From the sequence record MH791411.1: a stretch of 64,000 nucleotides of DNA. The stretch is one strand, 5' to 3'. Position 1 is the first letter of the stretch. The number at the start of each line of letters is the position of its first letter. The notes beneath the pieces were generated by a model. The model saw only the letters and a list, made by a program, of their open reading frames with translations, did not search any database and was not told the origin of the DNA. This document shows positions 22,429 through 39,634 of this stretch, piece by piece. The position numbers and the translations under genes were made by a program.

Positions 22429-22436
22429 ATTATTCC

Positions 22437-22625
22437 TTACATAGAGATGAGTTTCAGTACATCAATATACATATAACGTTCAGATGACATTACACGGGTA
22501 GTGATAATCTCAATCGATATATTTTTAATTCCATGTGCAGATGATTGATGGTGCTGAATAAATGAGTTGTGCATACTTTGTTCTATGTGGTTTAGTTTAT
22601 TGAAGTAGTACTCAAAAGTGTTCAT
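22437..22625 (-). CDS. mini-paralog family protein
   Basis: ends YIDVLKLISM. Confidence 0.8.
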   Translation of the reverse strand: MNTFEYYFNKLNHIEQSMHNSFIQHHQSSAHGIKNISIEIITTRVMSSERYMYIDVLKLISM

Positions 22626-22632
22626 GTCTACC

Positions 22633-22812
22633 TTAGATTGAGATTAGTTTAAGTACTTCTCTGTACGTGTACTTTTCGTTTTGTGCTTCTACTGTACATG
22701 ATAGTAGGTATCGTTTTTTATCTCTTTTGTTCCCGACTGTGTAGTACCTTTGGAATTTATTATAGTTGTATCTATCTTTGTGCTGGAGGTTATAGATATA
22801 GAATTCTTGCAT
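22633..22812 (-). CDS. mini-paralog family protein (59 aa, not in ORF track)
   Basis: hand-translated MQEFYIYNL...YTYREVLKLISI. Confidence 0.8.
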   Translation of the reverse strand: MQEFYIYNLQHKDRYNYNKFQRYYTVGNKRDKKRYLLSCTVEAQNEKYTYREVLKLISI

Positions 22813-22820
22813 AGAGTACC

Positions 22821-23006
22821 TTATATTGCTATCAGTTTGAGTACTTCAATATATGTGCGGTACTCTGCTTTAATTAAATTTGTACACACTGTAAGGGAAT
22901 TTCTTTGTATAAGTTTATTGCCGCTTTTATACGCATTTCTCCACACATAGAGATGAGATCTTTCAGGCATAGATAGTTTATTTGTATAGTACTCAAATGT
23001 ATTCAT
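22821..23006 (-). CDS. mini-paralog family protein
   Basis: ends YIEVLKLIAI. Confidence 0.8.
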   Translation of the reverse strand: MNTFEYYTNKLSMPERSHLYVWRNAYKSGNKLIQRNSLTVCTNLIKAEYRTYIEVLKLIAI

Positions 23007-23014
23007 ATATTACC

Positions 23015-23197
23015 TCAAATAGAGATTAGTTTAAGTACTTCTCTGTATGTGTACTTTTCGTTTTGTGCATCTCTTGTGCTTGTATATAGGTATCCTCGAC
23101 GATATTTGTTGCTCCCGTTCTTGTAGTTGAATTCGAACTTATTGTAGATGAATCTATCGCCAGGCTGTAATTTACTTAAGTACAATTCAATGCTCAT
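23015..23197 (-). CDS. mini-paralog family protein
   Basis: start at MSIELY; ends YTYREVLKLISI. Confidence 0.8.
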   Translation of the reverse strand: MSIELYLSKLQPGDRFIYNKFEFNYKNGSNKYRRGYLYTSTRDAQNEKYTYREVLKLISI

Positions 23198-23207
23198 AGT
23201 ATTCTCT

Positions 23208-23393
23208 TTACATATCAATAAGTTTCAGTACTGCTCTGTACGTGTACTTAGTTGTTAGTGCTTCTTTTATAGCAATACAGAAGTAATGTTGTTTGTCTCT
23301 TATACTACCGCGTTTGTAGTACCATACATTGGAGTTGTGGGTGTACTTGTCCCTGTCGGATAGATTTAGGTAATAGTATAATATATGATTCAT
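23208..23393 (-). CDS. mini-paralog family protein
   Basis: ends YTYRAVLKLIDM. Confidence 0.8.
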   Translation of the reverse strand: MNHILYYYLNLSDRDKYTHNSNVWYYKRGSIRDKQHYFCIAIKEALTTKYTYRAVLKLIDM

Positions 23394-23602
23394 GGTAATG
23401 TAATTAGCCTTATTATGTTAAAGTACTCGGTCCCTGGTACACCTTGTAGAATATTATCAACTACATTTTCTTGGTGCAGGATTAATACATTCGGTGCGGT
23501 TCTTTTAAGGTTTTTTAAAGTACTGTATTCTTGTTTAAGGATGAACTGTACATCTTTAGGGAGAATATCTAAGTAGTACTGGTGTATGTTCATAGTTTTC
23601 AT
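23390..23602 (-). CDS. mini-paralog family protein
   Basis: family pattern. Confidence 0.75.
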   Translation of the reverse strand: MKTMNIHQYYLDILPKDVQFILKQEYSTLKNLKRTAPNVLILHQENVVDNILQGVPGTEYFNIIRLITLP

Positions 23603-23613
23603 ATAGTACTCTT

Positions 23614-23799
23614 TTAGAACTTAAAGATGAGGTTCATGATAGATAAGTACTTAGTTTCAGGAAATTGATGTTCTATTGCATAACGTGTCTCCAGTCTGAA
23701 GTCAAATTTATAAAAGGGACTATTCATATCCATAGGTTCATTGGGAAATGAATCTCTGTATTGTTTGTGCAGCTTACTACAGTAGAATTCTTTATACAT
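23614..23799 (-). CDS. mini-paralog family protein
   Basis: family pattern. Confidence 0.8.
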   Translation of the reverse strand: MYKEFYCSKLHKQYRDSFPNEPMDMNSPFYKFDFRLETRYAIEHQFPETKYLSIMNLIFKF

Positions 23800-23800
23800 A

Positions 23801-24013
23801 TTAGTGCTCGATTAAAAGGGTTAGGATGTAATAGTATTGCATACTTTCTACCCCTTGTACAGCATTTCTTATTTTATTATTCCTGTACGAGTTCAAGAGT
23901 TTAGGACAATGTTTGAAGTTTATATAATTATTTTGTGTATACAGTAGGCTTTCTCGTAGACCTTTTGTTGGTAGTGCATCGATGTAGTACTGTTCAATGT
24001 TCATAGTGTTCAT
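23801..24013 (-). CDS. mini-paralog family protein
   Basis: similar to 23390-23602. Confidence 0.75.
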   Translation of the reverse strand: MNTMNIEQYYIDALPTKGLRESLLYTQNNYINFKHCPKLLNSYRNNKIRNAVQGVESMQYYYILTLLIEH

Positions 24014-24237
24014 AGAGCTACCAGTACTAAGATTTTTGATAATTGTTTGTTTCTATCCCCGCAGATGTTGTTGTGTAAAATGCTCACTACAAGGGTATCA
24101 AGTGCATTGTTCAGCATAAGGTTACATCCAGTACTGTTATATTTTTTTAGCTCAATTAGCCACGAACAATCCGCGAGAAATTTCCCGTACTCTAGTTCAT
24201 TTAGCGTATTAATGTAGTACTTAAGTGTAGTTGTCAT
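24010..24237 (-). CDS. mini-paralog family protein (first in operon)
   Basis: YYINTL...hLxLV; AGGAG RBS. Confidence 0.75.
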   Translation of the reverse strand: MTTTLKYYINTLNELEYGKFLADCSWLIELKKYNSTGCNLMLNNALDTLVVSILHNNICGDRNKQLSKILVLVAL

Positions 24238-24262
24238 GTGTAGTTCTCCTTATATTCCTTCT

Positions 24263-24291
24263 ATAGTACACCAGTACTGAAAGGATGTCAA
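24263..24291 (-). promoter_or_regulatory. sigma70 promoter of mini-paralog operon
   Basis: TTGACA-N17-TACTAT. Confidence 0.8.
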
Positions 24292-24308
24292 GGGTTTTGT
24301 TTATGGGG

Positions 24309-24316
24309 TATAAATA
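24309..24316 (+). promoter_or_regulatory. T4-type late promoter
   Basis: TATAAATA upstream of first RCC1-like gene. Confidence 0.75.
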
Positions 24317-24343
24317 TGATATAATGAATAAAGGAGAAGAAAT

Positions 24344-25492
24344 ATGTTACCTTTTGTTAGAATGTTTGATTATGGGAATGAAGCACCTACCAACTCTGGG
24401 CGTTTTAAAATATATTCCAGTGATTCTATGTATCTTCATGATACTTATACTGACAAGTTGTATGCATCTTCTGCGACGAATTGGGGTACTGGTACAGGTG
24501 TAGCATCGAGTAAATTTATTCTTTGTGCGGAGAATGTTAAACGAGTTCTATTGGAAGATAACAGTAGTGATTGTCAATTGTATGAAGAGAAAGGTACTGG
24601 AAAAGTTTTTATCACTGGTAACACGAAGGCATTCACTGGTGTAACTGATAGAAAAACTTTGTGGACGGACTGTACTACGTGGATAACATCAAGTGGTATT
24701 AATGTTTCTGATATAAAATACATGAGTAGTTTTTATGATATGAAGGTGAATTTGATAACAAACGATGGTACATTGTATTGTTGTGGAGCTAACAATATAT
24801 CGAACATATCATCATTTGGTGATGGCACAAACATTAATTCTTTTAACACATTCAAAAGAGTAGATACTATAACTTCGGTTAAAAAGGCAGTTGGTAACAT
24901 TTATTTGCGAGAAGATAATACTTTATGGGGTTGTGGTTTTAACTATTACTACCAGTTGGGCACGGGTAATCAAACTTCTATTACTGGGGTGACGATGATT
25001 TCTTCGGATGTTATAGATTTTAATGTAAGTTATCAGAGTACATTTTTTATCAAATCGGATAATAATTTGTACGCTTGTGGTAAACAGTTCGGTGCACAAT
25101 ATGGGAACGAATTTGGTACAGGTGGTACTTCTACATCTACAGATATACAATATAAAACTCCCACATTATTGAGTGCAGGTGTTTATAGTTTATATACTTG
25201 TGTTGGTAACATGGCATCACATATAGTTAAAGGTGATGAAGTACTTTATGCATCTGGAAGCAACTCGTCTGGTCAATTAGGTGTTGGTAATAATAATAAT
25301 CAGTACTCCTATACTCCTTCATATACTTCGTTTAATACCTCTTGTAATTTGGTACGCACCCCATCTGGTTCACTTATACTTACTGATACTGGAAAATTAT
25401 ATTATTGTGGCCTTGCAATAGTAGTAATGGGTGGTATTTCTGGACAGAACGTTCTTAATTATACAGAAGTCGATATGTCATTTTTGCAGTAA
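24344..25492 (+). CDS. RCC1-like beta-propeller protein 1 (probable virion accessory protein)
   Basis: MLPFVRMFDYGN leader; LYxCGxNxxGQLG repeats. Confidence 0.85.
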   Translation: MLPFVRMFDYGNEAPTNSGRFKIYSSDSMYLHDTYTDKLYASSATNWGTGTGVASSKFILCAENVKRVLLEDNSSDCQLYEEKGTGKVFITGNTKAFTGVTDRKTLWTDCTTWITSSGINVSDIKYMSSFYDMKVNLITNDGTLYCCGANNISNISSFGDGTNINSFNTFKRVDTITSVKKAVGNIYLREDNTLWGCGFNYYYQLGTGNQTSITGVTMISSDVIDFNVSYQSTFFIKSDNNLYACGKQFGAQYGNEFGTGGTSTSTDIQYKTPTLLSAGVYSLYTCVGNMASHIVKGDEVLYASGSNSSGQLGVGNNNNQYSYTPSYTSFNTSCNLVRTPSGSLILTDTGKLYYCGLAIVVMGGISGQNVLNYTEVDMSFLQ

Positions 25493-25559
25493 ATTAATAT
25501 GCCAGTACTTGATACTGGCTTTTTTGATTAAATATAGTATAATGAATAAAGGAGGAAAT

Positions 25560-26669
25560 ATGTTACCTTTTGTAAGAATGGTTAAGTACGGGAATATTGC
25601 ACCAGTACCGAAAAAAATAAAGAAAGTTATAGCAGGATATGATAATTTATATGTACTATATGGTGATGGTTCGCTATATGGTTGTGGAATCAATAACTAT
25701 CAACAGTTAAATATTGATGGAACTGCTACACAAAATAATTGGGTACTAATTACCAATGGTGTTAGTAATGCATGGGCTGGTGGATACAATATTTTATATT
25801 TGAAAGAAGATAAATTTATAATGCACGGAACTAATGTCTCATTAGGTTTAGGAAATACTACAATTCCATTAGGTGGAGTAGATGTAACTTCTTCATTCCC
25901 AGATATCTCTAATATTAAAATGATATCCATTGGTTTTGATTCAATGCACTATGTTAGTGCTGATGGTACAACTGTATATGGAAGAGGTATGAACACAAAT
26001 GGTTCTGTTGGTTCAGGTAGTACTTACTCACAGAGTACTTTCACTTCAGTACTGAATAATGGAACTAATCAGGTTATTGATATATTTGGTAACGTTAATA
26101 ATACAGTGCTTCTAACATCGAATGGTGAGCTTCGAGCATGTGGGACAAGTGCTTATGGTTCTATAGGAAATGAAACTGGTAAGTGGACATCGTTTGGTTT
26201 AAAATTATCTGGCACTAAAATAATGGGTGGTAATGGGTATAGTACGCTTGCATATACAAATTCGGGAATGTACCACTCAGGGTGGCAGTTAAATGGGGAA
26301 CTAGGAAATGGTTTAGATACTAACGTACAGGTATATCCATTTCAATTTAACTCTAAAACGATAGATAGCAAGATAGATAAAATTGCCAAATCATCATCTG
26401 GGTCATATGTTAACATGTACTCAACAACAGAAGGAAAGATATATACGACAGGTTCGTTTGGTAAAAACGGGTCAACTACTGCATTGAATTTGTTCACCAA
26501 TACATTAACACTTATAAATTACAATCCAGATACCGCCTCGTTGTATACGTGCACAAACTTCAGTGTTGTGTATGATGGTAATGAAACTATTGCTGTAAGT
26601 GGTAGTCCTACATATGTACCAGGGGGCGTTGCCGCTAATAGATGGACTACAATTCCATTACCCAAGTAA
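25560..26669 (+). CDS. RCC1-like beta-propeller protein 2
   Basis: MLPFVRMVKYGN leader; start corrected to RBS-preceded ATG. Confidence 0.85.
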   Translation: MLPFVRMVKYGNIAPVPKKIKKVIAGYDNLYVLYGDGSLYGCGINNYQQLNIDGTATQNNWVLITNGVSNAWAGGYNILYLKEDKFIMHGTNVSLGLGNTTIPLGGVDVTSSFPDISNIKMISIGFDSMHYVSADGTTVYGRGMNTNGSVGSGSTYSQSTFTSVLNNGTNQVIDIFGNVNNTVLLTSNGELRACGTSAYGSIGNETGKWTSFGLKLSGTKIMGGNGYSTLAYTNSGMYHSGWQLNGELGNGLDTNVQVYPFQFNSKTIDSKIDKIAKSSSGSYVNMYSTTEGKIYTTGSFGKNGSTTALNLFTNTLTLINYNPDTASLYTCTNFSVVYDGNETIAVSGSPTYVPGGVAANRWTTIPLPK

Positions 26670-26740
26670 TACTATGCCAGTACTTGAGTACTGGCTTTTC
26701 TTTTTGATTAAATATAGTATAATGAATAAAGGAGGGAAAT

Positions 26741-27922
26741 ATGTTACCTTTTGTTAGAATGTTTGATTATGGGAACGTCGTTGAGCCACCTGTGGGTACA
26801 CGTTATACCTGTAGTGACTATAGTGCGACTTATAGTTTAATAAAGGATGGTGTGTTATATGTATCTGGGATGAATAACTATTATCAGTTAGGTAATAACA
26901 CTAACGTAACACGTTACAACGAGTGGTTAAAAGTTCCAGAGACTGATAGTGTTAAGTTTTGTAGTACTGGTTATAGTCAGACAATGTATCTGACTAACAA
27001 TGGTAGGATAATGATAGCAGGTGAAGATCCTACTTCCAGTGCGACGGCGGTAAGTGTAAAGGTTTGGACGGATATAACTTCTAGATTTAGTGCAGTTGAT
27101 ACTAAAAAGATTGTTTATATTTCAATAGAACGTTATGGTGTAATGATGATCATGGAAGATGGTTCAGTATGGGCGTGTGGTGTTGATAATACTGGTTGGA
27201 GTGGACAAGGGAGTAAGACTGTTGGTTTCTTTACTTTCAGACAAATATACACCGGAAGTGCAGGAAGTGCAGTTGCTTGTACTGCTGGTACTGGCACTTC
27301 GAGGATTCTATTAGTTGATGGTACAATATTGTCCTCTGGTACTAATACATATCATCAATGTAATGCTAGTACTGATCTGGCTGTTCTAACATACACTGAA
27401 TCATTCCCTGGGGTTGATCCTTCATTGATATATCAAGTCAAGATGTGTAATAACAACTGTATTATATTCTTGAGTGATAAGAGATATTATGGTACTGGTT
27501 GGGGGAGTTTTGGTGCTTTGGGTGATGGTGATATTTCGGGTTCGAATAATAAATTCTATGCTGGTACATTGTCAGTTGCTCCTAAAAACATGCGTGCTTA
27601 TATGTCGTATCTATGTAGTTCTGCTGGGGATTCTAGTATGTACATAGGCGATGATAATTTCATATACACCTGCGGTTATCGTGGGAGGAACTTAATAAAT
27701 GCCACTACAGATATTGGGACGTTCACGAAATGCATTCAAAGTGCACAAGGATACAAGAATGGACTTATATATAGTGGGAATTATTGTGCTGTAGTTTTTG
27801 ATCCAGATTTGGGTTCAGGAATGACATATGCGGTTTCATCACCAAAAGTGAATGCACCAGCACCACAGGCGAGTGTTCCAACATTGGGTATGAGTTCGTT
27901 ACAAGCTATTATTTTACCATAA
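26741..27922 (+). CDS. RCC1-like beta-propeller protein 3
   Basis: MLPFVRMFDYGN leader; GxNxxxQLG repeats. Confidence 0.85.
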   Translation: MLPFVRMFDYGNVVEPPVGTRYTCSDYSATYSLIKDGVLYVSGMNNYYQLGNNTNVTRYNEWLKVPETDSVKFCSTGYSQTMYLTNNGRIMIAGEDPTSSATAVSVKVWTDITSRFSAVDTKKIVYISIERYGVMMIMEDGSVWACGVDNTGWSGQGSKTVGFFTFRQIYTGSAGSAVACTAGTGTSRILLVDGTILSSGTNTYHQCNASTDLAVLTYTESFPGVDPSLIYQVKMCNNNCIIFLSDKRYYGTGWGSFGALGDGDISGSNNKFYAGTLSVAPKNMRAYMSYLCSSAGDSSMYIGDDNFIYTCGYRGRNLINATTDIGTFTKCIQSAQGYKNGLIYSGNYCAVVFDPDLGSGMTYAVSSPKVNAPAPQASVPTLGMSSLQAIILP

Positions 27923-27998
27923 CATTATACCAGTACTGAAATACGTACTGGTATTTTTTTTGTAAATACATTATAATTATTATATGGAGATTTTAGTT

Positions 27999-29192
27999 AT
28001 GTTACCTTTTGCAAGAATGGTTAAGTACGGGAATAAACTGCCTATTCCTGAACCAGTTGAGTTCACTGATGTTTTACAGCAACATTATACTAATGCTATG
28101 TATCTACATAAGCCCACGAATACACTATACGGTTATGGTGGTAATAACTTGAGCCAATTAGGTCTAGGGAATCAATCGGCAGTTTCAACTTTTACAGTAC
28201 TGGCAACGCACTGTGCAGCCTTTTGGTTAGGCGTTCATGGATCATTGATGATTGACTTGGATAATAGAATATATTTCACAGGGAATACAGTAGCATTCCC
28301 CGATTATGGAGATGCAACTCCAGTTAATGGTTATTTTAGAACATGGACTGATGTTACTGCCGCATTTAACAAAATAAATATACACGCTAATTTAATCAAG
28401 AGTGTACATATAGGTGAAAGTACTAGAATATTACTACACGATGGAAGAGTCGTTGTTTGTGGTAAAAATGCAAATGCCGAATGTGGAACAGGTAACCAAA
28501 ATCCCATTCCAGTACTAACAGTTGTTACTGGTATGGGTGAAGTTTCTCAATTGGCGTGTTCATTACAGGGTACGCACTATCTCAAAACAAATAAAGAAGC
28601 ATGGTTTTGTGGTAAGGATAACTTTGGTGAAAGTGGTGGTGGGACTAGCTCATACGTTTTTACTAATAAATTAATACGAACCAACGTCGATTATATAAGT
28701 ACTACTTATGATGTTACCTGGTGGTTTACTGCCGGTAGGGTGTACTGGAGTGGTAGAAACAATTCTGGACAAGCTGGGAATGGTACTACTTCAACTACAA
28801 ACCAATTAACTACAGTTCAGAATTCACAGGTTATAGTGAATATTAGTGATGGTTTCCTGTGTCCTAGTAATATGGGTAACTCAACAATTGGTGCACCTAT
28901 GGCTCAATACCCATCATATGTCAGGAGTGCAGGCATCAATACATATGGTCAAGAAGGGACGGGAAATACAACAATAATTACTTCGTGGGGGGCGTTTTCT
29001 TTAAGTGCGATACAGGGTGGATATGACAATGTTCTTATGGCATCCAAAGACTGGTCCAGAACAATAATTATAACTAAAGATTATAAATTATATGCATGTG
29101 GGGGCTTTAACGGTTCAGGTAGTAAATTACCGGATGGTACTTACTTAATTAAAACATTAACATTAATGCCAACGCAGTTATGGCAACAATAG
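27999..29192 (+). CDS. RCC1-like beta-propeller protein 4
   Basis: MLPFARMVKYGN leader. Confidence 0.85.
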   Translation: MLPFARMVKYGNKLPIPEPVEFTDVLQQHYTNAMYLHKPTNTLYGYGGNNLSQLGLGNQSAVSTFTVLATHCAAFWLGVHGSLMIDLDNRIYFTGNTVAFPDYGDATPVNGYFRTWTDVTAAFNKINIHANLIKSVHIGESTRILLHDGRVVVCGKNANAECGTGNQNPIPVLTVVTGMGEVSQLACSLQGTHYLKTNKEAWFCGKDNFGESGGGTSSYVFTNKLIRTNVDYISTTYDVTWWFTAGRVYWSGRNNSGQAGNGTTSTTNQLTTVQNSQVIVNISDGFLCPSNMGNSTIGAPMAQYPSYVRSAGINTYGQEGTGNTTIITSWGAFSLSAIQGGYDNVLMASKDWSRTIIITKDYKLYACGGFNGSGSKLPDGTYLIKTLTLMPTQLWQQ

Positions 29193-29200
29193 GAGGAATT

Positions 29201-30310
29201 ATGTTACCTTTTGTAAGACTATTTGATTATGGGAATATTACACCTGGTCCTAAAAATATAATAAAAGTTGGTGCTTCTACACAAGGTCAATTCGTATTGA
29301 CTGATTCACATGAATTATATTACATAGGCAGAAATCAAGGTGGTGAATCTGGAAATGGTAATAAAAACACGGTATCTTCTTGGACATTAGTAAGTGCAGA
29401 TGTTTCTAATTTTTTCACTGGAGGACGAACACTTGTTATTATTAAAAATGACAATACGATATGGACATCAGGTGAAACATATTGGTTCACATCATCAACA
29501 ACAACTTCTTACAGTACTACATTAGTTGATAGAACGGAGTGGTTTACAAATACAATTCCTGTGAATCAAATTGCTAATATTGTATGCAATGGTGGTGTAA
29601 TATTTGTACTCAGTTCAAGTTCAGTACTCTATGGTGCTGGGGCTAATGGATACCGTGGTGTATTGGGGATTGGTTCTTCATCAATATATACATTAACACT
29701 ATGTGCTTCTAATGTGCGTAAAGTTATGTCTACTCCTAATGATAGTATGTATATTAGCATAGATAATAAGTTATATAGTTCAGGGTGGAATGACCGTGGA
29801 TTACATGGCACAGGGAACAGAACACAAGTTAACATTTGGGGACTGCGTAGTTCTGGTGTAATAGATGCAGCTATTGGTGGACATACACTCAATTACTATA
29901 ATGGTACATCATATTTCACATGTGGTACAACTCCAAACTTTCTTAGTTCAGATTCAACTACATTCAAAGCAGTTCCTGTAAGTACTTTACCTAATAATTC
30001 ACCTTTGTTTATGACAAATTCAGAGGCAACAAGCACGGCTACGCAAATTATATTAACTAGTGCATATCAGAAAGGTATTGGGGGAAACCGTGGTTTGGGA
30101 TTAAACAATTCTCAAACGGGTGCTATCTATAGTGCTGCTAATTTACAATTACCTGTAGAAGTTAGTGAGATTAGTGATGTTGCTTTTAGTGACGGATTAA
30201 CATCATTATTAACCAAAGACGGGAATGTATATAGTACTGGATCGTATTACGCCATTCCAGGTGCAAGTGCAGATGTTGCAGTCTTTACTAAAATTGATTT
30301 ACCAAAATAA
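29201..30310 (+). CDS. RCC1-like beta-propeller protein 5
   Basis: MLPFVRLFDYGN leader; only 8 bp after gene 4. Confidence 0.85.
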   Translation: MLPFVRLFDYGNITPGPKNIIKVGASTQGQFVLTDSHELYYIGRNQGGESGNGNKNTVSSWTLVSADVSNFFTGGRTLVIIKNDNTIWTSGETYWFTSSTTTSYSTTLVDRTEWFTNTIPVNQIANIVCNGGVIFVLSSSSVLYGAGANGYRGVLGIGSSSIYTLTLCASNVRKVMSTPNDSMYISIDNKLYSSGWNDRGLHGTGNRTQVNIWGLRSSGVIDAAIGGHTLNYYNGTSYFTCGTTPNFLSSDSTTFKAVPVSTLPNNSPLFMTNSEATSTATQIILTSAYQKGIGGNRGLGLNNSQTGAIYSAANLQLPVEVSEISDVAFSDGLTSLLTKDGNVYSTGSYYAIPGASADVAVFTKIDLPK

Positions 30311-30380
30311 CATAATGCCAGTACTCAGTACTGGCTTTTCTTTTTTATTAAATATAGTATAATGAATAAAGGAGGAATAT

Positions 30381-31560
30381 ATGTTACCTTTTGTTAGATT
30401 ATTTGATTATGGGAATATTGCCCCTGTCAAAGATACTGTTGTTAAAATTAATAGTGATGAAAATTCAATAAGCGTATTATACAGTGATGGGTCATTATAT
30501 ATGCGTGGACGGAAACCAATCAGCAAAAATGGGAGTTACTGGTTCATCTTTTTTGGATAGATGGGTTTTATGTCCTTATAGTGTTGATGATTTCTGGAGT
30601 TCTCTATATTGTACTATAATTAGAACAAAACAAGGGGAATTGTACTATAGTGGGACTAACTCAGTTTTTGGTATATCATCTTCGGTTTCAACATGGACTC
30701 GTTGTGAATCATATTTTGGATTTATTTCTCCGAGTTCAATAAAAGATATAAAAATAACATCATCAACCGGAACTAACAATTCCATGTTAATACTAACAAG
30801 TGACGGGCAGTTATATGGTATAGGCATGAATGGTGCAAGTGAATTGGGTACAGCAACTGCACCAATTACATCTCCACTCTTAATTGACACTAGTGTATCT
30901 GCAATTGCATCTAGTGAAATGAGCAGAAACTTTCACTATATAAAAGATGGTATATATTATCGTTGTGGTGAGAATACTTTTTATCAATTAGGAACCGGTG
31001 ATAATAAGCCTATTACTAGTTTTACTGCATTGAATCTTGGTAGTTCTCATGTAATTGCAGTACAAGCTACACGATGGGTAACACGTTTGATTGTTCAAAG
31101 TAGTACATCTGCTTTGTCTTTAATGGCGGCTGGTTGGAACACACAGTTGACTATAGGTGGTTCTGAAAATACTGGTATAATAAGGTCATCATTTACTACC
31201 AATCCCTATACCGATATAACAGCAAATTCATTCGATAAACTTTCACCAGTATCCTATGTTAATGCAATAAAATCCAGTACTAACATTATTAATACGAATG
31301 GTAAGGGATATAATTCTAATGGTGCTGGTTTAGGCCGCAACGCAGTCTCTGGGAATTATGGTTCAATATTACCAATAGAATTCTTTGATGATAGTGTTGA
31401 CTTATCACATGTTGAGTGGTTTGGTACGATTGGTAATGGTTCAGTATCGGTAGTTAGTATAGGTGAGGATTTATACTGGACTGGAAACCCTGGGTATTTT
31501 ACTGAACAAGGTGAGACTGGATATATATATAAATTCAAAAAGTGCGTTCCTTTTAGATAA
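30381..31560 (+). pseudogene. RCC1-like beta-propeller protein 6, frameshifted (or sequencing error)
   Basis: MLPFVRLFDYGN frame stops at 30560; removing one A at 30513-30515 gives LYMRGRNQSAKMG joined to ORF 30484-31560. Confidence 0.8.
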
Positions 31561-31630
31561 ACACAATGCCAGTACTTGAGTACTGGCATTCTTTTTGATT
31601 AAATATAGTATAATGAATAAAGGAGGAAAT

Positions 31631-32776
31631 ATGTTACCTTTTGTTAGAATGTTTGATTATGGGAATGAAGCACCTGTACCAGTTGGTATAAAGATGGTAA
31701 AAGTTTTACAGAATAATGTGTTTATTTTATTAGAAGACGGAAGGTTATATGGCAGAGGGCATAATTTTTACTATCAATTAGGTACTGGTAGTAGTTCTCC
31801 TACTATAGTTGAAGAGTGGGTTTTATGTTTAACTGATGTAAAGGAATTTTGGACTACTGGTGATACACAAGGAATATTAGTACGTAAAAATGATGGCACA
31901 TGGTGGAGTACTGGTACTCAAATCTATCGTGGTGTTAATACTACTTATCGTGTATGGACAGAAATACTTGGTATTTTTAATAATGTGAATGACACATATA
32001 GTAAAATAGTTATAGGAAACGGCGTTACATTATTATTAACAATAGATAATAAATTATATAAGATGGGTGACAATAACAACGGTGAAGTTTTTACTGGGGC
32101 TGTTGGACAAAGAGTATCAGTACTGACATTGACCCCAGAAGTTGATGTTAAAGATATTGGTGTAACCGCGAATAATGCTTCATTTGTATTATACAATGAT
32201 GGAACATTAAAGTACAGTGGGAATAAATCTAGTATTGGTTCGACTGGTACAACTACCACATTGACTACTGTTACTACTGGAGTATTACAGATAAATTCGG
32301 AAAATGCATATAGTGCTAATTACGTATTAAAGAGTGATGGGCTATATGTATTCGGTTCACAAATAGATGGACAGTTGGGTGATGGCACTGATGGCACTAT
32401 TAACAGTCTTAGAACAATCACAAAGATACCAGCTTCTAGTATTCCTAGTACTGCGATTGATTACATAGGTGGTTCTAATTATGAAGCACACGTTAGAGCA
32501 GGTGGTATATGGTATTTCGCTGGGCGTGGAAACGCTTCTGGAGATGGAATAACGAACTCTAATGTTATTAAAACATGGCGTGCATGTACTAATATAACTG
32601 AACCAGTTCCATATGATAAAATGACACATGGTTATATGATAACATTCATGTTAAAAAACGGTGAATTATATGGTTCAGGGAATGGTAGTAGAACTGCTGG
32701 TATGGGTACAATTCCGTATGAAGAAGAAAATGCCGGAAATACAGGATTATTTAAAAAAATAGTTACACCGAGTTAA
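31631..32776 (+). CDS. RCC1-like beta-propeller protein 7
   Basis: MLPFVRMFDYGN leader. Confidence 0.85.
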   Translation: MLPFVRMFDYGNEAPVPVGIKMVKVLQNNVFILLEDGRLYGRGHNFYYQLGTGSSSPTIVEEWVLCLTDVKEFWTTGDTQGILVRKNDGTWWSTGTQIYRGVNTTYRVWTEILGIFNNVNDTYSKIVIGNGVTLLLTIDNKLYKMGDNNNGEVFTGAVGQRVSVLTLTPEVDVKDIGVTANNASFVLYNDGTLKYSGNKSSIGSTGTTTTLTTVTTGVLQINSENAYSANYVLKSDGLYVFGSQIDGQLGDGTDGTINSLRTITKIPASSIPSTAIDYIGGSNYEAHVRAGGIWYFAGRGNASGDGITNSNVIKTWRACTNITEPVPYDKMTHGYMITFMLKNGELYGSGNGSRTAGMGTIPYEEENAGNTGLFKKIVTPS

Positions 32777-32852
32777 AATTAAAATGCCAGTACTTGAGTA
32801 CTGGCATTTCTTTTTTTGATTAAATATAGTATAATGAATAAAGGAGGAAAAT

Positions 32853-34043
32853 ATGTTACCTTTTGTTAGATTGTTTGATTATGGGAATATCACACCTGAA
32901 CCTCTTCTAATTAAGAAAATAATACCAACTGATACTGATGTGGTTGTACTTTATACTGACGGTCAACTATACGCACGAGGAAATAATAGTTATGGGAAGT
33001 TCGGTCGCGGAAATAATAATGCAGTAAGGTCGTGGACATTAATTAGAGAAAATGTCAAAGATTGCTGGATGACACAAGGAACTTTGTTAGTTCAAGATAA
33101 GGACTTAAATTATTTTTATTGTGGATATGGTGGTCATATTGGTTTAGAAACTAGTACTACATCATTTTTAAGTTATAACCAATATATTGAAAATTTGTAC
33201 ACACAAAGTTCAGGTACTTCAATTAAACAGATGTATGCAGGTACTACGTGGTTTACTTTCTTAATGGATAATAATACAATATGGAGTACTGGTTGGAGTG
33301 GGGCTAGACAATTCGCTGATGGTACTGGTAGTACTCAACAAATAACAGATGGATCATTTGTAAAAGCTGTCACGCCTAATGTTGATATTGCACGAATACA
33401 GTCAACAAATAGCTGTGTAATGTTTTATGATACACAAAATAATTTATATATTGGTGGTAGTACATCAGGTATAAGTACTACTGATACATGGACTCCATAC
33501 AATCAATATACTTTATATCAGCCAAGTACAACATATACAAAAACATTACAATATGTTGTATGTACAATTGGTGCAGTCAGTGCTTTAGTGGAGAATCCAA
33601 GTACAGGAGCACGTCAGTTCCTAGTGGGTGGGAACGCCAATAATGGGGCATGGGGTAATAACACTACGTCTAGTACAGCACGAGCAGTATTAGGAAATAA
33701 TAGTACAACCTTACCACCCGGTACTTTGTATTCAATTCATACTGGATACCCAGCACAATCTAGTATACTAGTTACGAGTTCTGGTGTATATGCAACAGGT
33801 TTAAATGCGAGTAGTTATGCTGGTTCATTGGGTGTTGGTTCTAATGTTACCATTGGTAAATTTACTGCATGTCCATTGCCGTCAGAAATAACATATTCTA
33901 TGTATGATAAAATAAAAATATATCGAGGGTCGTTACGTACTTTCCTAACTGCTGATATGAAAAATATATATTCAACCGGAACTTATGATGATGGTGGTCC
34001 TAGTACAAATAGATATGTACTTGATACTCCAAGACAACTATAA
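32853..34043 (+). CDS. RCC1-like beta-propeller protein 8
   Basis: MLPFVRLFDYGN leader. Confidence 0.85.
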   Translation: MLPFVRLFDYGNITPEPLLIKKIIPTDTDVVVLYTDGQLYARGNNSYGKFGRGNNNAVRSWTLIRENVKDCWMTQGTLLVQDKDLNYFYCGYGGHIGLETSTTSFLSYNQYIENLYTQSSGTSIKQMYAGTTWFTFLMDNNTIWSTGWSGARQFADGTGSTQQITDGSFVKAVTPNVDIARIQSTNSCVMFYDTQNNLYIGGSTSGISTTDTWTPYNQYTLYQPSTTYTKTLQYVVCTIGAVSALVENPSTGARQFLVGGNANNGAWGNNTTSSTARAVLGNNSTTLPPGTLYSIHTGYPAQSSILVTSSGVYATGLNASSYAGSLGVGSNVTIGKFTACPLPSEITYSMYDKIKIYRGSLRTFLTADMKNIYSTGTYDDGGPSTNRYVLDTPRQL

Positions 34044-34115
34044 CAATAATGCCAGTACTTGATACTGGCTTTTATTTTTTTGATTAAATATAGTATAATG
34101 AATAAAGGAGGAAAT

Positions 34116-35303
34116 ATGTTACCTTTTGCAAGAATGGTTAAGTACGGGAATAAAGTCATTCCATATGTTCCCAATTTTACTAAATTAGTCACCCCAGCAG
34201 TTGGTTATTCATTTACATGCACAATGCTGCTTGATGTAAATGGATCAGTGTGGGCTATGGGTCTTCAGAATGCAGGAATTTTTGGGTTAGGTAATACTAC
34301 ACAGGTTACTGAATGGACAAAAATATATAACAATGTTAAAGATTTTTGGTGCAGCACGGGGAATGGTTTTTGTCTAATACGAACAAATGATGATAGATTC
34401 TTTTATAGTGGTTTAGATAAATGGCTAGGTAACAATACAACAAATACTGTAACAACATTCACTGAATGTACGAGTTATTTTACACAATTTGGTATTTCAA
34501 AAATCAAAGAAATATATGTAGGTCTTGATTATGCTTTGATTTTAGGTACTGATAATAGTTTATATTTGTTAGGTGATAATAAAAATTCAAAGTTTGGTTT
34601 AAACACTGCATCATATTTTAATAAATTTACATTTTTAGTCGATAATGTTAAAAAATTCTGTTCATCCATCACACCATCTAACTGGATTATTAAACTAGAT
34701 AATACAATATGGCGTACTGGGACAACATCTCATGGAACGTTGGGAAATGGAGTTCAAAACACATATATATTTCCTTGGGTTCAATATAAGGGCACACCTG
34801 TTACCGAAGCTATAGACGTTTTTTGTAGTGCGAGTTATATTGGTATTATAACTAAAGGTACACCAGAATCATGTCCTATGTATACACTAGGCTATCAAGC
34901 TGATGGTCAGTTGGGTAATAATACTACAGCAGGGGGTTATAAATTAACGCCAACATTATCGAAAACCGTTCCAGATGATAGTGAATTCATTCGAATTGAA
35001 AACATCTCATCCCGTGGTCTGGTATATTATAGCTCTGGTAAAATTTATAGTACTGGTTATAATAACAATGGTCAGTTGGCAAATAATACTAAAATCAATT
35101 CTGGTTCATTTGTTGAAGCAATTTTACCTAATGGTGTTAACTTTAAGAAAAGTGAATCACTTGTAGCTGGGAACGATGCAACGTTGTATATGTACATTAA
35201 TAATAAATTATACTACGCGGGGAAATCTCCTGATAATATTTCAGCAAGTAGTTCGTCTGTCATGAAAGAATTCCCACTTCCAACAATTAATGCCAGTACT
35301 TGA
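34116..35303 (+). CDS. RCC1-like beta-propeller protein 9
   Basis: MLPFARMVKYGN leader. Confidence 0.85.
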   Translation: MLPFARMVKYGNKVIPYVPNFTKLVTPAVGYSFTCTMLLDVNGSVWAMGLQNAGIFGLGNTTQVTEWTKIYNNVKDFWCSTGNGFCLIRTNDDRFFYSGLDKWLGNNTTNTVTTFTECTSYFTQFGISKIKEIYVGLDYALILGTDNSLYLLGDNKNSKFGLNTASYFNKFTFLVDNVKKFCSSITPSNWIIKLDNTIWRTGTTSHGTLGNGVQNTYIFPWVQYKGTPVTEAIDVFCSASYIGIITKGTPESCPMYTLGYQADGQLGNNTTAGGYKLTPTLSKTVPDDSEFIRIENISSRGLVYYSSGKIYSTGYNNNGQLANNTKINSGSFVEAILPNGVNFKKSESLVAGNDATLYMYINNKLYYAGKSPDNISASSSSVMKEFPLPTINAST

Positions 35304-35355
35304 TACTGGCTTTTCTTTTTGTATTAAATATAGTATAATGAATAAAGGAGGGAAT

Positions 35356-36507
35356 ATGTTACCTTTTGCAAGAATGGTTAAGTACGGGAATATTGCACCA
35401 GTTCCTGTAGTTCCTACAATAAAAGATTTTAAGATTGGATTTTCACATGAAGTGTTATTGGACAGTGCAGGTGATGTATGGGGTATTGGATACAATACAG
35501 ATGGACAGTTGGGATTTCTGGATGCTAACACAAATTCAATAGGAATGTGGTCTAAGATACATGAGAATGTTAGATTAATTGGCGTTACTGCCAATTATAC
35601 TGTAGTTGTTACAAATGATAATAGAATACTTTACGCCGGAAATAACTTAATTTCTAGTACTACAACGCTTGGGTGGAACGATATAACGTCCAGTATGGGA
35701 GAGGTTGCAGTGGATAGTATAGATACATTATATTGCACAGATGGAATGATGCATATTAAAACTGCTGATGGCTCTTTATATGCATATGGACGTAATATGA
35801 ACGCGAACGCTGGAGTTACAGGCGTTTCTGGCGTTATTAGTGTTGCAACTAAAGTTAGTGGTTTACCATCGGCAGTGAAGGATATACGATATACGTTTAG
35901 TTATGGTTCAGTACTATGCCAATTTGATACCACTTCGGTATATGGATGGGGAAGAAATGTCAATGGTGAATTAGGTCAGGGGAATGCAGCCGCAGTTCCT
36001 GCCCCATACCTATTGGCGGGAGCTTCTATTGTTATAGGTACTTCTTATAATGCTACTGCCATTGTTTCTGGTACTGGAACGTTAGTTACATGTGGTGGAC
36101 AAAATAATGGTCAGTTAGGTAATGGTATTACTACTGCTGGTAATGTATACATATATGGTGCTAGGTCATACCCTGGCGATCTTAATAATATAAGAAGTCC
36201 AGTAGATTGTAGTACAACTTATACTTCCGCATTTATGAGTACAGATGGTATATATTACACGGGTTCGAACCGAAGTGTTTTTGGTGGTGCGAGTGGTTCT
36301 GCTACTGTTGCATTATATACTAAATGTAGTGATTTGCCAATATTATATTCCAATATAACTCAGTGGGGTAGTGGTACTATTGGTGGGGCGATATGTAGCA
36401 GAACTGAATTATATCAGTGTGGTACAGGTAGATACATTGCCGGAGATGGACAGAACGCAACTAGGTATGGGTTTAGAAAGACACCATTACCTTGGGATGT
36501 TTATTGA
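35356..36507 (+). CDS. RCC1-like beta-propeller protein 10
   Basis: MLPFARMVKYGN leader. Confidence 0.85.
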   Translation: MLPFARMVKYGNIAPVPVVPTIKDFKIGFSHEVLLDSAGDVWGIGYNTDGQLGFLDANTNSIGMWSKIHENVRLIGVTANYTVVVTNDNRILYAGNNLISSTTTLGWNDITSSMGEVAVDSIDTLYCTDGMMHIKTADGSLYAYGRNMNANAGVTGVSGVISVATKVSGLPSAVKDIRYTFSYGSVLCQFDTTSVYGWGRNVNGELGQGNAAAVPAPYLLAGASIVIGTSYNATAIVSGTGTLVTCGGQNNGQLGNGITTAGNVYIYGARSYPGDLNNIRSPVDCSTTYTSAFMSTDGIYYTGSNRSVFGGASGSATVALYTKCSDLPILYSNITQWGSGTIGGAICSRTELYQCGTGRYIAGDGQNATRYGFRKTPLPWDVY

Positions 36508-36577
36508 AATAATGCCAGTACTCTGTACTGGCTTTTCTTTTTGATTAAATATAGTATAAAGAATAAAGGAGGGAATT

Positions 36578-37714
36578 ATGTTACCTTTTGCAAGAATGGT
36601 TAAGTACGGGAATATAAAAGTAAAGAGTACTATACAAAAAGTTATACTTGGTGGTGGTGGTCAATGTGTGGTAACATTACTCAGTGATGGTAGAGTGTAT
36701 GGACGTGGTTACAACACTACACATGGGTTAGGTACTGGTACAACAACATTCGTAAGTGATTGGGTATTAATGGGAGATAATATTGTTGATATCCATTCAA
36801 ATGGTGTTACTGGAACATTCCTTATTACCAAAGAAAATAGAATATTGTATTCTGGTTTTGCGACACCAATCAATGGCACAACATCACATTATACACGTTT
36901 CACTGATTTAACATCAACTGTATTTGCTGCGGTGGATGTTAGTAATATTAAAACAATTACGGGAAATGGTAATGTTACAATGGTTCTTTTGAATGATGGT
37001 TCACTTTATGGGAGTGGTGCAAATATAGGGGTTATAGGTAATGGTAGTAACGTTGCATTATCAACACAAACATATGTGACTAATGATGTGCGTGATGTGA
37101 AAACATATCCATCAATGAACACTATAACAAAAAATAATAATCAAATATTGGCTAGTGGTATTTTATACCAAGGCGTGAACGGTACAAATTCATCAATAAA
37201 CACGTCTTCATATACATTACTGTACACATTACCGAGTTCTGATTGTTTTCAATTTGCATTTGATACATATACATTTGGATATGTTGACCCTAGTACTAAC
37301 ACTTCTTATATAAGAGGTATACCAATAAATGGTTCATTAGGTAATGGCGTTACTAATAATACAGCAGTTACAACATGGGTTACTAAAGTTTGGAATACAC
37401 CAATTGATAGTTCTATACCTAATAAATCATATACAACTAACCATGTCTCCTTGTTCAATGATGGAAACTTATGGACAACTGGTGCATCTAGTGTAGGTTA
37501 TTCCAATGGTACAAATAGCACAACAGCTAATACATGGACCAGTTCATCTAATTTACCATTCAACACTAATAACATAACAGACTATGCTTTTGGTGGTAGT
37601 ATTACTGTAGTGGTAATCGACTACAGGACTATGTACATACTAGCTAACAACGCCATTGCTGGTACTGCTACGACAACTTATAAATTTGAGCCATATAATT
37701 CTCCACCAGTTTAA
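36578..37714 (+). CDS. RCC1-like beta-propeller protein 11
   Basis: MLPFARMVKYGN leader. Confidence 0.85.
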   Translation: MLPFARMVKYGNIKVKSTIQKVILGGGGQCVVTLLSDGRVYGRGYNTTHGLGTGTTTFVSDWVLMGDNIVDIHSNGVTGTFLITKENRILYSGFATPINGTTSHYTRFTDLTSTVFAAVDVSNIKTITGNGNVTMVLLNDGSLYGSGANIGVIGNGSNVALSTQTYVTNDVRDVKTYPSMNTITKNNNQILASGILYQGVNGTNSSINTSSYTLLYTLPSSDCFQFAFDTYTFGYVDPSTNTSYIRGIPINGSLGNGVTNNTAVTTWVTKVWNTPIDSSIPNKSYTTNHVSLFNDGNLWTTGASSVGYSNGTNSTTANTWTSSSNLPFNTNNITDYAFGGSITVVVIDYRTMYILANNAIAGTATTTYKFEPYNSPPV

Positions 37715-37746
37715 TATAATGCCAGTACTATGTACTGGCTTTTCTT

Positions 37747-38397
37747 TTACATATTATATAATGTGAATGCAGTCACTTTACCAGTTGTTGTTAGTTCATT
37801 ATAAAGATACTCCAAGATTCTCGCACACTCTAAGTATATCTCGATATCATCATGAATAAGTGAGTACTGAAATAGCTGTTCTTCAGGTAATTTGTATTGA
37901 CTTCCTTTTAATGAATTGAGAATATCTTTCACATCATCAAGTACTGGGTAAAGTACGAAATCTTCATCATATTTTGAAGCAATAAATTCAAATCCACCAC
38001 CATCAGTACTAGATATACCAATCAGTACTTTATCAATCAAGTTAATGTTTATATAACGGTTGTGATTTGGGTGAATTGAAATCTCAAACATAAGAGTACT
38101 GTTACAATCAACATCAATATACAAATATACATCATTGAATTTATAAGTTAAGCAACCGTACTCAAGAAAATCAGAGCAAATAATTGATGAGTTTTTTCTC
38201 GTCTCTGCGTAATGCATCTTGATATTCTTTTCACGCATAAGTAATTCGAACTTTGCACTAAACTTGCCACCAGCAAGATAGTTAGTATTAGGACGTTTGT
38301 AACTTGCAACTGGTCGGTGGGATGATGTAAAGTATTTTTTTGTGAATCGTTTATGTTTAGTGAAATATTCTTGATAGAACTTACTTCTTTTATTCAT
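37747..38397 (-). CDS. hypothetical protein, basic N-terminus, EExLFQYS motif family
   Basis: 216 aa, inverted within the propeller array. Confidence 0.8.
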   Translation of the reverse strand: MNKRSKFYQEYFTKHKRFTKKYFTSSHRPVASYKRPNTNYLAGGKFSAKFELLMREKNIKMHYAETRKNSSIICSDFLEYGCLTYKFNDVYLYIDVDCNSTLMFEISIHPNHNRYININLIDKVLIGISSTDGGGFEFIASKYDEDFVLYPVLDDVKDILNSLKGSQYKLPEEQLFQYSLIHDDIEIYLECARILEYLYNELTTTGKVTAFTLYNM

Positions 38398-38474
38398 GAG
38401 TACCTCAATTAAATCGCTGTAAAATTGTACATTATAAAATGATTAAATAAAGTATAACACAAGGAGATTTTATC

Positions 38475-39599
38475 ATGTTACCTTTCGTATTGTTATTTGA
38501 TTATGGGAACGAAAAACAAGAAAGTTCTTATGATGTTAGTGTATATGGAAACAATAACTACATTTTAAATAAACAAACTGGAAACCTTTTTGCATCCGGT
38601 GCTGCGGCATTCATGGGTGATAACACAGTTAAGTATTATATTACCCAAATAGAATCAAATGTTCATAGCTGTGAGATAGGTTTCCTATCATCATGGATAA
38701 TTAAGAAGGACAAAACTGTTTTCATTTTAGGAAACAAAAGCAGTATAGGATTAACTGGTTCGACAACATCATGGTTCGAAATTACAAATTTATTTTCTGC
38801 TGTTCCTGAAATATGGGACAACCTATTTGAATGTAAAGTTCAATTGGGATATAACTGTATACGTGTTATGACACCACTAGGATCAATCTATGCGATTGGT
38901 ACAAACACTTATGGTGCATTGGGTACTGGTACTACATCCTCATCAACTTCGTTCGTTAAAAGTGGTGCTGTGGATGCTGTACGCATGGAATCAACAGAAC
39001 GTTCAGTGTTCTATCAAAACAGTTCTGGACAATGGTTTGGATGTGGTGATAACACATATGGTATACTAGGTCTAGGAACTACCGCGAGTCGTGTAAACTC
39101 ATACACCGCACCAGTATGGACTAATGCAGAAGCTGTTAGCTTCTCTAACCGTGGGATCATATACAGCCTCAATGGTACTCTATACTCATGTGGTGACAAA
39201 GTTAATGGTCAGCTAGGGGATGGATATACACAAAGCATAGACGCTGCCAGGAGCACACCATACACCATAGGAACCGCATTCCAAATTGGTAAGGCAATAA
39301 CATCAGCTACACAAGCATCAGCCAACGTATTCATTGGTAAAGATAATAAGTTCTATGGTACTGGTAGTATTGCTGCTGGTATAAATGGTAGTGCTAGTGC
39401 TGCATTAAGTAAAGTTACTGCGTTATCAGCATCACTACCACCTGACATTACATACAATGATATTATAACATTTAATACAGGGACCGTAACTTTTATTCAA
39501 GCAAAAGGACAACTATATTATGTTGGTAGAAGAACTTACATAGATAATAGTTCAGACGTTACCACACAGTTCAGTGTAATTGGTGGCTTAGATAATTAA
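38475..39599 (+). CDS. RCC1-like beta-propeller protein 12
   Basis: MLPFVLLFDYGN leader; TTAAATA upstream. Confidence 0.85.
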   Translation: MLPFVLLFDYGNEKQESSYDVSVYGNNNYILNKQTGNLFASGAAAFMGDNTVKYYITQIESNVHSCEIGFLSSWIIKKDKTVFILGNKSSIGLTGSTTSWFEITNLFSAVPEIWDNLFECKVQLGYNCIRVMTPLGSIYAIGTNTYGALGTGTTSSSTSFVKSGAVDAVRMESTERSVFYQNSSGQWFGCGDNTYGILGLGTTASRVNSYTAPVWTNAEAVSFSNRGIIYSLNGTLYSCGDKVNGQLGDGYTQSIDAARSTPYTIGTAFQIGKAITSATQASANVFIGKDNKFYGTGSIAAGINGSASAALSKVTALSASLPPDITYNDIITFNTGTVTFIQAKGQLYYVGRRTYIDNSSDVTTQFSVIGGLDN

Positions 39600-39604
39600 A
39601 ATTA

Positions 39605-39634
39605 ATCCAGTACTATTATAGTACTGGATTTTTT
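39605..39634. terminator. bidirectional intrinsic terminator
   Basis: AATCCAGTACT-ATTAT-AGTACTGGATT between convergent genes. Confidence 0.8.

Follow-up and report, generated by a model that had tools for sequence, protein, structure and literature searches.

The closest known mechanism to the one described here is that of the promoter-early stem-loop (PeSL) cassettes of the T4-type phages RB49 and phi1, in which the regulatory repeats are the joints of recombination (Arbiol et al. 2010, PMC2839356). RCC1-like proteins have meanwhile been described in the virions of large phages, including GAP32 gp001, phAPEC6 gp003-010 and gp549-551, 121Q_234-248 and W70_237-239 (PMC5259590, PMC7247149, PMC11370258). 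They belong to the same phrog_4219 family as the genes analyzed here, occupy the same locus in Asteriusvirus, and were interpreted as DNA-condensation factors. Multi-copy RCC1-like genes, their detection in virions and the Rak2-like late motif are already in print; in the searchable literature we found no description of the self-contained late cassette, the assignment of the array promoters to the late class, the invariant leader, its movement from one fold to another, the alternative leader of another lineage, or the map of breakpoints. We analyze a tandem array of 12 RCC1-like propeller genes in a 64,000-nucleotide stretch of DNA (the window), which is the last 64 kb of the genome of Escherichia phage Ecwhy_1 (100% identity; record MH791411.1, 354,537 bp). 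The genes of this array are exchanged between phages as whole cassettes, with breakpoints in a short block of DNA that the cassettes share and that encodes a 12-residue N-terminal leader peptide.

Ecwhy_1 is an Asteriusvirus of the 121Q/PBECO4 group of Rak2-like jumbo myoviruses, and a position in the window equals the position in MH791411.1 minus 290,537. The array is on the plus strand, flanked on both sides by long stretches of small minus-strand genes without assigned function, and the sign of the GC skew flips across it. It contains 12 leader-bearing RCC1-like propeller genes, starting at positions 24344, 25560, 26741, 27999, 29201, 30381, 31631, 32853, 34116, 35356, 36578 and 38475. Eleven are intact and encode products of 369-397 amino acids (aa), and one, g6, is frameshifted. 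The bodies are 22-34% identical to one another, which agrees with the initial annotation's account of twelve genes of about 370-400 aa with divergent bodies and a conserved MLPFxRxxxYGN N-terminus. Across the whole Ecwhy_1 genome, a six-frame scan for the leader peptide and a search for RCC1-like open reading frames (ORFs), using a family profile hidden Markov model built from alignment A1, each returned exactly 12 matches, all within the array. A 216-aa minus-strand gene sits between g11 and g12. The features of the array are listed below; MS denotes mass spectrometry and RBS a ribosome-binding site.

24311-39630 (+): whole array; begins with the first late-type promoter and ends with the terminator past the last gene
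24311-24379 (+): g1 block with promoter hexamer, RBS and 12-codon leader; its hairpin part has diverged
24344-25492 (+): g1, RCC1-like propeller, 382 aa, body type A; 95% identical to phAPEC6 gp549 (virion MS)
25501-25595 (+): canonical block 5' of g2 with hairpin terminator, late-type promoter, RBS and leader
25560-26669 (+): g2, RCC1-like propeller, 369 aa, type B
26676-26776 (+): canonical block 5' of g3
26741-27922 (+): g3, RCC1-like propeller, 393 aa, type C
27927-28034 (+): diverged block 5' of g4; hairpin and promoter both variant
27999-29192 (+): g4, RCC1-like propeller, 397 aa, type D
29201-30310 (+): g5, RCC1-like propeller, 369 aa, type E; without its own promoter or terminator, RBS within the end of g4
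30317-30416 (+): canonical block 5' of g6
30381-31560 (+): g6, type F, broken by one frameshift
31565-31666 (+): canonical block 5' of g7
31631-32776 (+): g7, RCC1-like propeller, 381 aa, type G
32782-32888 (+): canonical block 5' of g8
32853-34043 (+): g8, RCC1-like propeller, 396 aa, type H
34051-34151 (+): canonical block 5' of g9
34116-35303 (+): g9, RCC1-like propeller, 395 aa, type I
35292-35391 (+): canonical block 5' of g10
35356-36507 (+): g10, RCC1-like propeller, 383 aa, type J; modeled as seven-bladed; 93% identical to phAPEC6 gp005 (virion MS)
36514-36613 (+): canonical block 5' of g11
36578-37714 (+): g11, RCC1-like propeller, 378 aa, type K
37721-37739 (no strand assigned): hairpin between the convergent g11 and minus-strand gene, terminator-like on both strands
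37747-38397 (-): 216-aa gene, phrog_34359, no Pfam match; also present at this site in WPEC3, fEgEco12 and EC.P1
38444-38510 (+): diverged promoter, RBS and leader 5' of g12
38475-39599 (+): g12, RCC1-like propeller, 374 aa, type L
39604-39630 (no strand assigned): hairpin terminator that closes the array, 12 pairs, -15.7 kcal/mol

A near-identical block of about 105 nt precedes exactly eight of these genes (g2, g3 and g6-g11), the same number that had first been counted from the letters of the window. The block follows a fixed order: the stop codon of the preceding gene, a GCCAGTACT..AGTACTGGC hairpin with a T-run, the TAAATATAGTATAAT element, AAGGAGG, and the ATG with the 12 leader codons. 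Diverged versions stand before g1, g4 and g12, and g5 has an RBS and leader alone, overlapping the end of g4; the type E body that g5 carries here has a full block in phAPEC6. The block hairpins have folding energies from -10 to -16 kcal/mol (z from -3.7 to -6.5), and the array contains 23 terminator-like hairpins where 6.6 are expected. The first 12 codons are nearly invariant, synonymous sites included. Leader residues Leu2, Pro3, Arg6 and Gly11 are each encoded by one synonymous codon in every copy having that residue, and the glycine codon in question, GGG, makes up only 13% of the glycine codons in the bodies; under body codon usage, the joint probability of these frozen codons is about 5e-23. 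Because the synonymous codons of the leader are frozen, the block is kept alike at the DNA level, beyond the requirements of the peptide. A known RNA element in the spacer was considered and rejected, the sole match being a sub-threshold one to preQ1-II (31 versus 47 bits, E = 0.07) that we take as chance.

One palindrome, AGTACT, forms the stems of the array terminators and is abundant in the whole Ecwhy_1 genome, window positions 24250-39634 included: its 986 copies are 8.2 times the roughly 120 that base composition predicts, and the 6-nt palindrome that ranks second in enrichment reaches 2.3-fold. Its intergenic copies number 155 against 91 expected, and its commonest context is TTCAGTACTGAA. 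Five 6-nt palindromes are absent from the genome with 11-36 copies of each expected (CCGCGG, CCCGGG, CCATGG, AGGCCT and AGCGCT).

We compared six arrays, those of Ecwhy_1, phAPEC6, WPEC3, fEgEco12, PBECO4 and EC.P1, reading the circular phAPEC6 record across its origin as deposited. Among 37 related records, just one spans 80% or more of the Ecwhy_1 array. The six arrays hold 9-15 leaders each, and their 79 cassettes fall into 28 body types at 80% nucleotide identity, of which only three are common to all six phages. Gene order varies too, with G-J-H in one phage and G-H-I-J in another, and with type A in mid-array in PBECO4; four shortened cassettes of 244-269 codons are spread over three of the other phages. 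The ends of the high-identity segments fall almost without exception (29 of 30) between -110 and +45 of a leader ATG, an interval that makes up 12% of the array (binomial p = 7e-26). Within it, the 3' ends of homology cluster at +31 to +38, and the 5' ends at -64 to -78. From phage to phage, one body type is found with different leaders and with different upstream blocks, and in a single genome as many as five unrelated bodies begin with an identical 36-nt leader. Since the RBS spacing varies, we compared block divergence both by leader only and with the hexamer as anchor; the leaders of the same body in the two main lineages differ at a mean of 5.35 of 36 nt, as compared with a mean of 4.31 for unrelated bodies within a genome. 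Cassettes are exchanged as units with breakpoints in the block, as expected from the initial annotation, which had the spacer drive homologous expansion, deletion and swapping and called for a comparison of arrays across isolates. It had also stated that the window holds no recombinase or reverse transcriptase, and we found neither among the window's large ORFs; a general recombination protein is encoded elsewhere in the Ecwhy_1 genome.

Two details of these arrays deserve mention in their own right. phAPEC6 has an M-N-M-N run, explained by the duplication in tandem of two genes as a unit or, possibly, by the way the record was assembled at its origin, and one copy at the very start of that record is unannotated. 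The broken gene g6, entered in GenBank as two coding sequences, has a single frameshift; we analyzed its two pieces separately, and they abut on the family profile with nothing missing and no internal in-frame stops. A leader piece of equal length, 59 codons, occurs in four of the six phages (Ecwhy_1, WPEC3, PBECO4 and EC.P1), and because of this recurrence we regard the break as old and inherited rather than as a sequencing error. For the g6 body, the ratio of nonsynonymous to synonymous substitution rates (dN/dS) comes to about 0.4 from just 20 differences, a value that does not separate a dead gene from a live one.

The bodies of the array are RCC1-like propellers, assigned to phrog_4219 in PHROGs. 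The RCC1-like domain (PF25390) matches all twelve products with E-values from 4e-8 to 1e-30, below its 150-bit whole-domain cut-off, and RCC1 (PF00415) and/or RCC1_2 (PF13540) repeats exceed their cut-offs in most of the proteins. An AlphaFold2 model of g10 is a seven-bladed propeller with 27 strands (predicted local distance difference test score, pLDDT, of 91; predicted template-modeling score, pTM, of 0.88), whose closest solved structures are UVR8, RPGR, the RCC1-like domains of HERC2, and RCC1 (template-modeling score up to 0.77, best E 1.6e-22). We assign the fold because of the profile matches and this model, and not because of the glycine-rich motif. The GxNxxGQLG-type repeats on which the fold had initially been called are degenerate, with zero to two strict matches per protein, so that part of the call falls while the fold itself holds. 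In an alignment of 22 sequences the invariant residues are M1, P3, F4, Y10, G11 and N12, and no other non-glycine residue is invariant. The proteins are near-neutral (isoelectric point 5.1-8.6, net charge -5 to +4.5). Between phages, orthologous bodies have dN/dS ratios of 0.15-0.30; they are functional genes under purifying selection. Because of these ratios, the diversity of the array is that of a shuffled pool of old functional alleles, and not the product of hypermutation. A diversity-generating retroelement or other targeted hypermutation was rejected on the same ratios and on the lack of a reverse transcriptase among the large ORFs of the window. RCC1-like propellers also form part of annotated tail-fiber proteins in other phages.

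We assessed the promoter in the block against the phage's own structural genes, using upstream regions across the whole Ecwhy_1 genome and setting aside the T4 letters quoted in the initial annotation. The block hexamer lies 28-67 nt 5' of the start codon in 30 of the 38 genes that are annotated as structural and have their own upstream space, compared with three of the 58 small non-structural genes on the minus strand (Fisher p = 2.7e-14). The small non-structural genes, which are of early type, carry sigma-70-type TTGAC-17-TATAAT promoters. In the array, the hexamer stands 31 nt before the ATG in 11 of the 12 genes. The phage encodes a late sigma factor (L004:18012-18947, minus strand; phrog_12791, 'sigma factor for late transcription', E 1.4e-152; phrog_234, E 1.5e-16), whose gene adjoins SbcCD-like nuclease genes and has no Pfam match. 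The same type of motif precedes structural genes in CBB and GAP32, which also have a gp55-like sigma factor (Buttimer et al., PMC5259590). By motif association, it is well supported that the array promoters belong to the phage's late class, and the late-promoter claim made from the window alone is borne out in this form. A sigma-70 promoter in the block was rejected: a TATAAT-like hexamer is present, but it has neither a -35 element nor a TG extension, and a generic scan of the array returned 71 sigma-70-like sites against 88.8 expected, no excess. The Ecwhy_1 record, which is labeled UNVERIFIED and enters several genes as non-coding 'similar to' features, includes a second sigma-factor-like gene among them (L002:1662-2627).

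We now turn to the leader, whose distribution across phages supports its reading as a portable module. Its family is confined to Rak2-like phages of about 350 kb that infect Escherichia, Salmonella, Yersinia, Cronobacter, Klebsiella and Xanthomonas. The peptide takes the form MIPF..YGN in Salmonella phage Munch and MLPF..YGN in GAP32, XbC2 and the Yersinia phage, where the codons and the upstream DNA differ. Yersinia phage fHe-Yen9-04 and Munch have tightly packed arrays without a block for each gene, and both keep an M[LI]PF..YGN-like peptide. The leader also heads proteins of other folds. It begins GAP32_002 and ten relatives (phrog_6011, 'virion structural protein'), with M1, P3, F4 and Y10 kept in all of them, and a model of this family (pLDDT 84) is a ConA-like lectin sandwich that resembles the carbohydrate-binding domains of glycosidases and sialidases. 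Three proteins of phage XbC2 begin with the leader as well (a Kelch propeller, an RCC1-Kelch fusion and a 'structural protein'), as does a Gly_rich_2 protein of Munch. A scan of IMG/VR with the DNA pattern of the leader matched one contig.

A separate lineage carries a separate peptide. The approximately 137-kb Vequintavirinae phage W70 has three tandem RCC1-like virion genes (L021:7543-11041; OP778610), whose products have homology to the family profile that begins near residue 16 (E 1e-31 to 1e-46) and share a different leader, MLEM[ML]NL. The peptide thus appears to track the phage lineage rather than the fold, as a docking or targeting signal would. The leader is predicted to be disordered. 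Its pLDDT falls below 50 at residues 5-11 in the g10 propeller model and at residues 1-3, 5-7 and 9-12 in the model of an unrelated leader-bearing protein, and it is placed outside the fold in both. Three other roles were considered and set aside. As the strand that closes the propeller ('velcro'), the leader would have to be structured; in the model residues 1 to about 20 are unstructured and the first strand begins at residue 22, and the same holds in the unrelated fold. As a general tag in Ecwhy_1, it would be found beyond the propellers, and the whole-genome scan places it on propellers alone. A leucine at position 2 should block removal of the initiator methionine, and an N-degron for the phage's ClpS-like adaptor, which was considered only, is disfavored by Leu2 for that reason.

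The proteins of the array are likely to be associated with the particle, virion detection having been made for orthologues and relatives. Eight array members (gp003, 005, 006, 007, 009, 010, 549 and 551) are listed in the virion MS of phAPEC6 (PMC7247149, Table 1), and by orthology gp005 is 93% identical to g10, gp549 95% to g1 and gp009 64% to g2. GAP32 gp001 is a structural protein verified by MS (PMC5259590), and the JP4 supplement lists two leader-bearing proteins in its virion MS. In the Vequintavirinae, W70_237-239, the three tandem phrog_4219 members, gave 141-233 spectra, similar to baseplate proteins (PMC11370258). Of the proposal that the propellers are virion adhesins or decoration proteins, association with the virion is upheld in these relatives (phAPEC6, GAP32, JP4 and W70); surface location, docking through the leader and the tuning of host range form no part of that support.

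We consider it probable that the array encodes late binding modules that are carried by the virion and bear a portable incorporation tag, and that homologous exchange in the block diversifies this repertoire. The locus would then be a hypervariable tandem repertoire of late-transcribed seven-bladed propellers that are minor components of the virion. Each cassette would consist of an intrinsic terminator hairpin, its own late-type promoter, a strong RBS and the 12 codons of an unstructured N-terminal peptide. The block of about 105 bp, as the only DNA common to the cassettes, would provide homology for the phage's general recombination, and recombination there would insert, delete, duplicate, replace and reorder whole cassettes. 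A pool of old, purified alleles would thereby supply the isolates of one species with different sets. The peptide would be the tag by which, most likely, the variable bodies enter or attach to the particle, presumably as an incorporation signal, and the bodies would be its ligand-binding heads. Because the promoter, RBS and tag are near-identical, all paralogues would be expected to be expressed together and to compete equally for one site, resulting in mixed particles. Exposure at the surface seems somewhat more likely than packaging inside, because of the lectin-type scaffolds, the RCC1-like propellers in tail-fiber proteins elsewhere, and the near-neutral charge. An extended version of this proposal, possible and put forward tentatively, has a lineage-specific docking tag (MLPFxRxxxYGN in the Rak2-like phages, MLEMxNL in the W70 group) load exchangeable lectin-like heads onto one site of the particle. 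With promoter, RBS and tag near-identical, supply and affinity would be equalized, and each burst would contain mosaic particles, a bet-hedging repertoire of adhesion that is kept by recombination in the block.

Several observations weigh against the proposal of a tagged, virion-borne repertoire, and some of them fit other explanations as well. The breakpoint ends are not independent events, as the six phages share ancestry; the high-identity segments run through any shared block by construction, so that crossovers are placed to the block and no finer. The promoter class is a matter of motif association and not of mapped transcripts. All virion detections come from relatives and none from the Ecwhy_1 particle itself; those in phAPEC6 are weak, with 1-5 unique peptides each (PMC7247149), and those in JP4 consist of one peptide per protein. 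Within Ecwhy_1 the leader stands on no protein besides the propellers, and, whether retained or cleaved, it is only a putative binding element. The virion list of phAPEC6 also includes a topoisomerase, a RecA-like protein, an SSB and a thymidylate synthase (PMC7247149), and because of these non-structural proteins co-purification is possible. The array products could, in that case, be intracellular proteins made late and in abundance, such as decoys or host-factor binders, with leader and block conserved for expression and recombination and not as a tag. The single-peptide detections in JP4 and the confinement of the leader to propellers in Ecwhy_1 fit this explanation, as do the frozen synonymous sites, which denote a constraint at the DNA or RNA level or homogenization. 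We nevertheless find it improbable: family members occur in four independent virion proteomes, with spectrum counts like those of baseplate proteins in W70; the leader heads proteins annotated as virion structural from proteomics; it is conserved as a peptide across genera despite differing codons and upstream DNA; and the Yersinia and Munch arrays retain the peptide without a block for each gene.

Much of the evidence for a tagged repertoire would also fit if the propellers were internal head proteins. The leader would then be a T4-like capsid-targeting sequence that directs the bodies to the prohead core, where they are packed with the DNA; once ejected, they would block host defense as an anti-defense repertoire. 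The layout parallels that of the T4 internal proteins, where a short conserved N-terminal tag stands on diverse proteins (PMC3012670), and Ecwhy_1 encodes a T4-type prohead protease (Peptidase_S77, E 8e-21; phrog_207), with a scaffold gene adjoining the major capsid gene. The capsids of phAPEC6 hold an inner body, perhaps with propellers within it, and both the low peptide counts and the late expression judged from the motif would suit minor internal components. The bodies themselves, however, are rigid 40-kDa propellers, lectin-like sandwiches and Kelch propellers, which are typical extracellular binding folds and large for a tail tube. Their near-neutral charge is unlike that of the T4 internal proteins, which are small and basic. 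A T4-type prohead protease site is expected to contain an acidic residue, yet none is conserved after the leader in the 22 aligned sequences, where such a site would be expected. RCC1-like propellers occur, moreover, in the annotated tail-fiber proteins of other phages, and we judge an internal location unlikely. The function written in many database records, 'DNA condensation protein' or 'regulator of chromosome condensation', and considered by the authors of the phAPEC6 and W70 papers (PMC7247149, PMC11370258), is DNA condensation or packaging. That name derives from the eukaryotic RCC1 fold only, and the proteins are near-neutral with no DNA-binding feature. A housekeeping role in packaging also misfits copy numbers from one to at least 15, the 28 allele types in six phages and the loss or replacement of genes between isolates of one species; CBB, for its part, is reported without a homologue of GAP32 gp001 (PMC5259590). 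We therefore regard DNA condensation as highly improbable.

The surroundings of the array yielded several further observations. To its left, at window positions of about 20000-24300, lies a second cassette-like array, with diverged repeats spaced by about 190, 380 and 580 nt that surround minus-strand ORFs of about 60 aa, and with gaps between the annotated genes; WPEC3 has 15 tandem genes of about 60 aa at this position. A run of imperfect 8-nt units occupies window positions 18425-18576, inside about 2 kb without annotated genes (approximately 17650-19630). To the right, an AAA/STAND-like NTPase adjoins a 447-aa protein with a CapR homology domain (42146-42913 and 42984-44324, both on the minus strand), the NTPase matches being weak and below Pfam cut-offs except for PF00004. 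Among seven minus-strand genes of about 110 aa to the right of the array, BLASTP detected no paralogy.

RCC1-like virion proteins occur in several groups of large phages, where they are labeled as DNA condensation proteins from the eukaryotic name alone. Our analysis replaces this label with a testable picture, a repertoire of binding modules in late cassettes with a 12-residue tag that also stands on unrelated lectin-like virion proteins and varies with the phage lineage. If the tag serves as an incorporation signal, it would be among the shortest natural virion-addressing peptides known outside T4, and it would explain why a single locus holds much of the difference between isolates within a species. 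It would also extend the PeSL idea to late genes and into coding sequence.

The systems that resemble the array each share one part of it. With the eukaryotic RCC1-like domain proteins (RCC1, UVR8, RPGR and HERC2), the bodies have in common the seven-bladed fold and the Pfam RCC1 repeats, whereas identity is 15-19% and the Ran or chromatin partner is absent in bacteria, so that only the scaffold is shared. The promoters resemble those of a T4-type late regulon, likewise a short A/T-rich element without a -35 that is specific to structural genes and served by a phage-encoded late sigma factor. The leader recalls the arrangement in T4 internal proteins, where diverse particle proteins, polymorphic between related phages, begin with a short conserved peptide (PMC3012670); here the leader stands on RCC1, Kelch, ConA-like and Gly-rich bodies, and a T4-type prohead protease is present. 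This is an analogy of layout only, and we claim no relation in sequence; the bodies of the array are large, neutral binding folds, encoded by 12-15 paralogues in tandem, and each paralogue has a late promoter to itself. The PeSL cassettes share the most with the array. Both consist of short repeated intergenic modules of stem-loop terminator, promoter and RBS, both are concentrated in a hyperplastic region of non-essential genes, and in both the ends of insertions, deletions and replacements between close relatives fall in the modules. The array differs in that its promoter is late-type without a -35, whereas PeSLs use sigma-70 early promoters, and in that its genes all belong to one protein family, whereas PeSLs flank unrelated ORFans. 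In the array, the repeat extends 36 nt into the coding region, where it encodes a conserved peptide.

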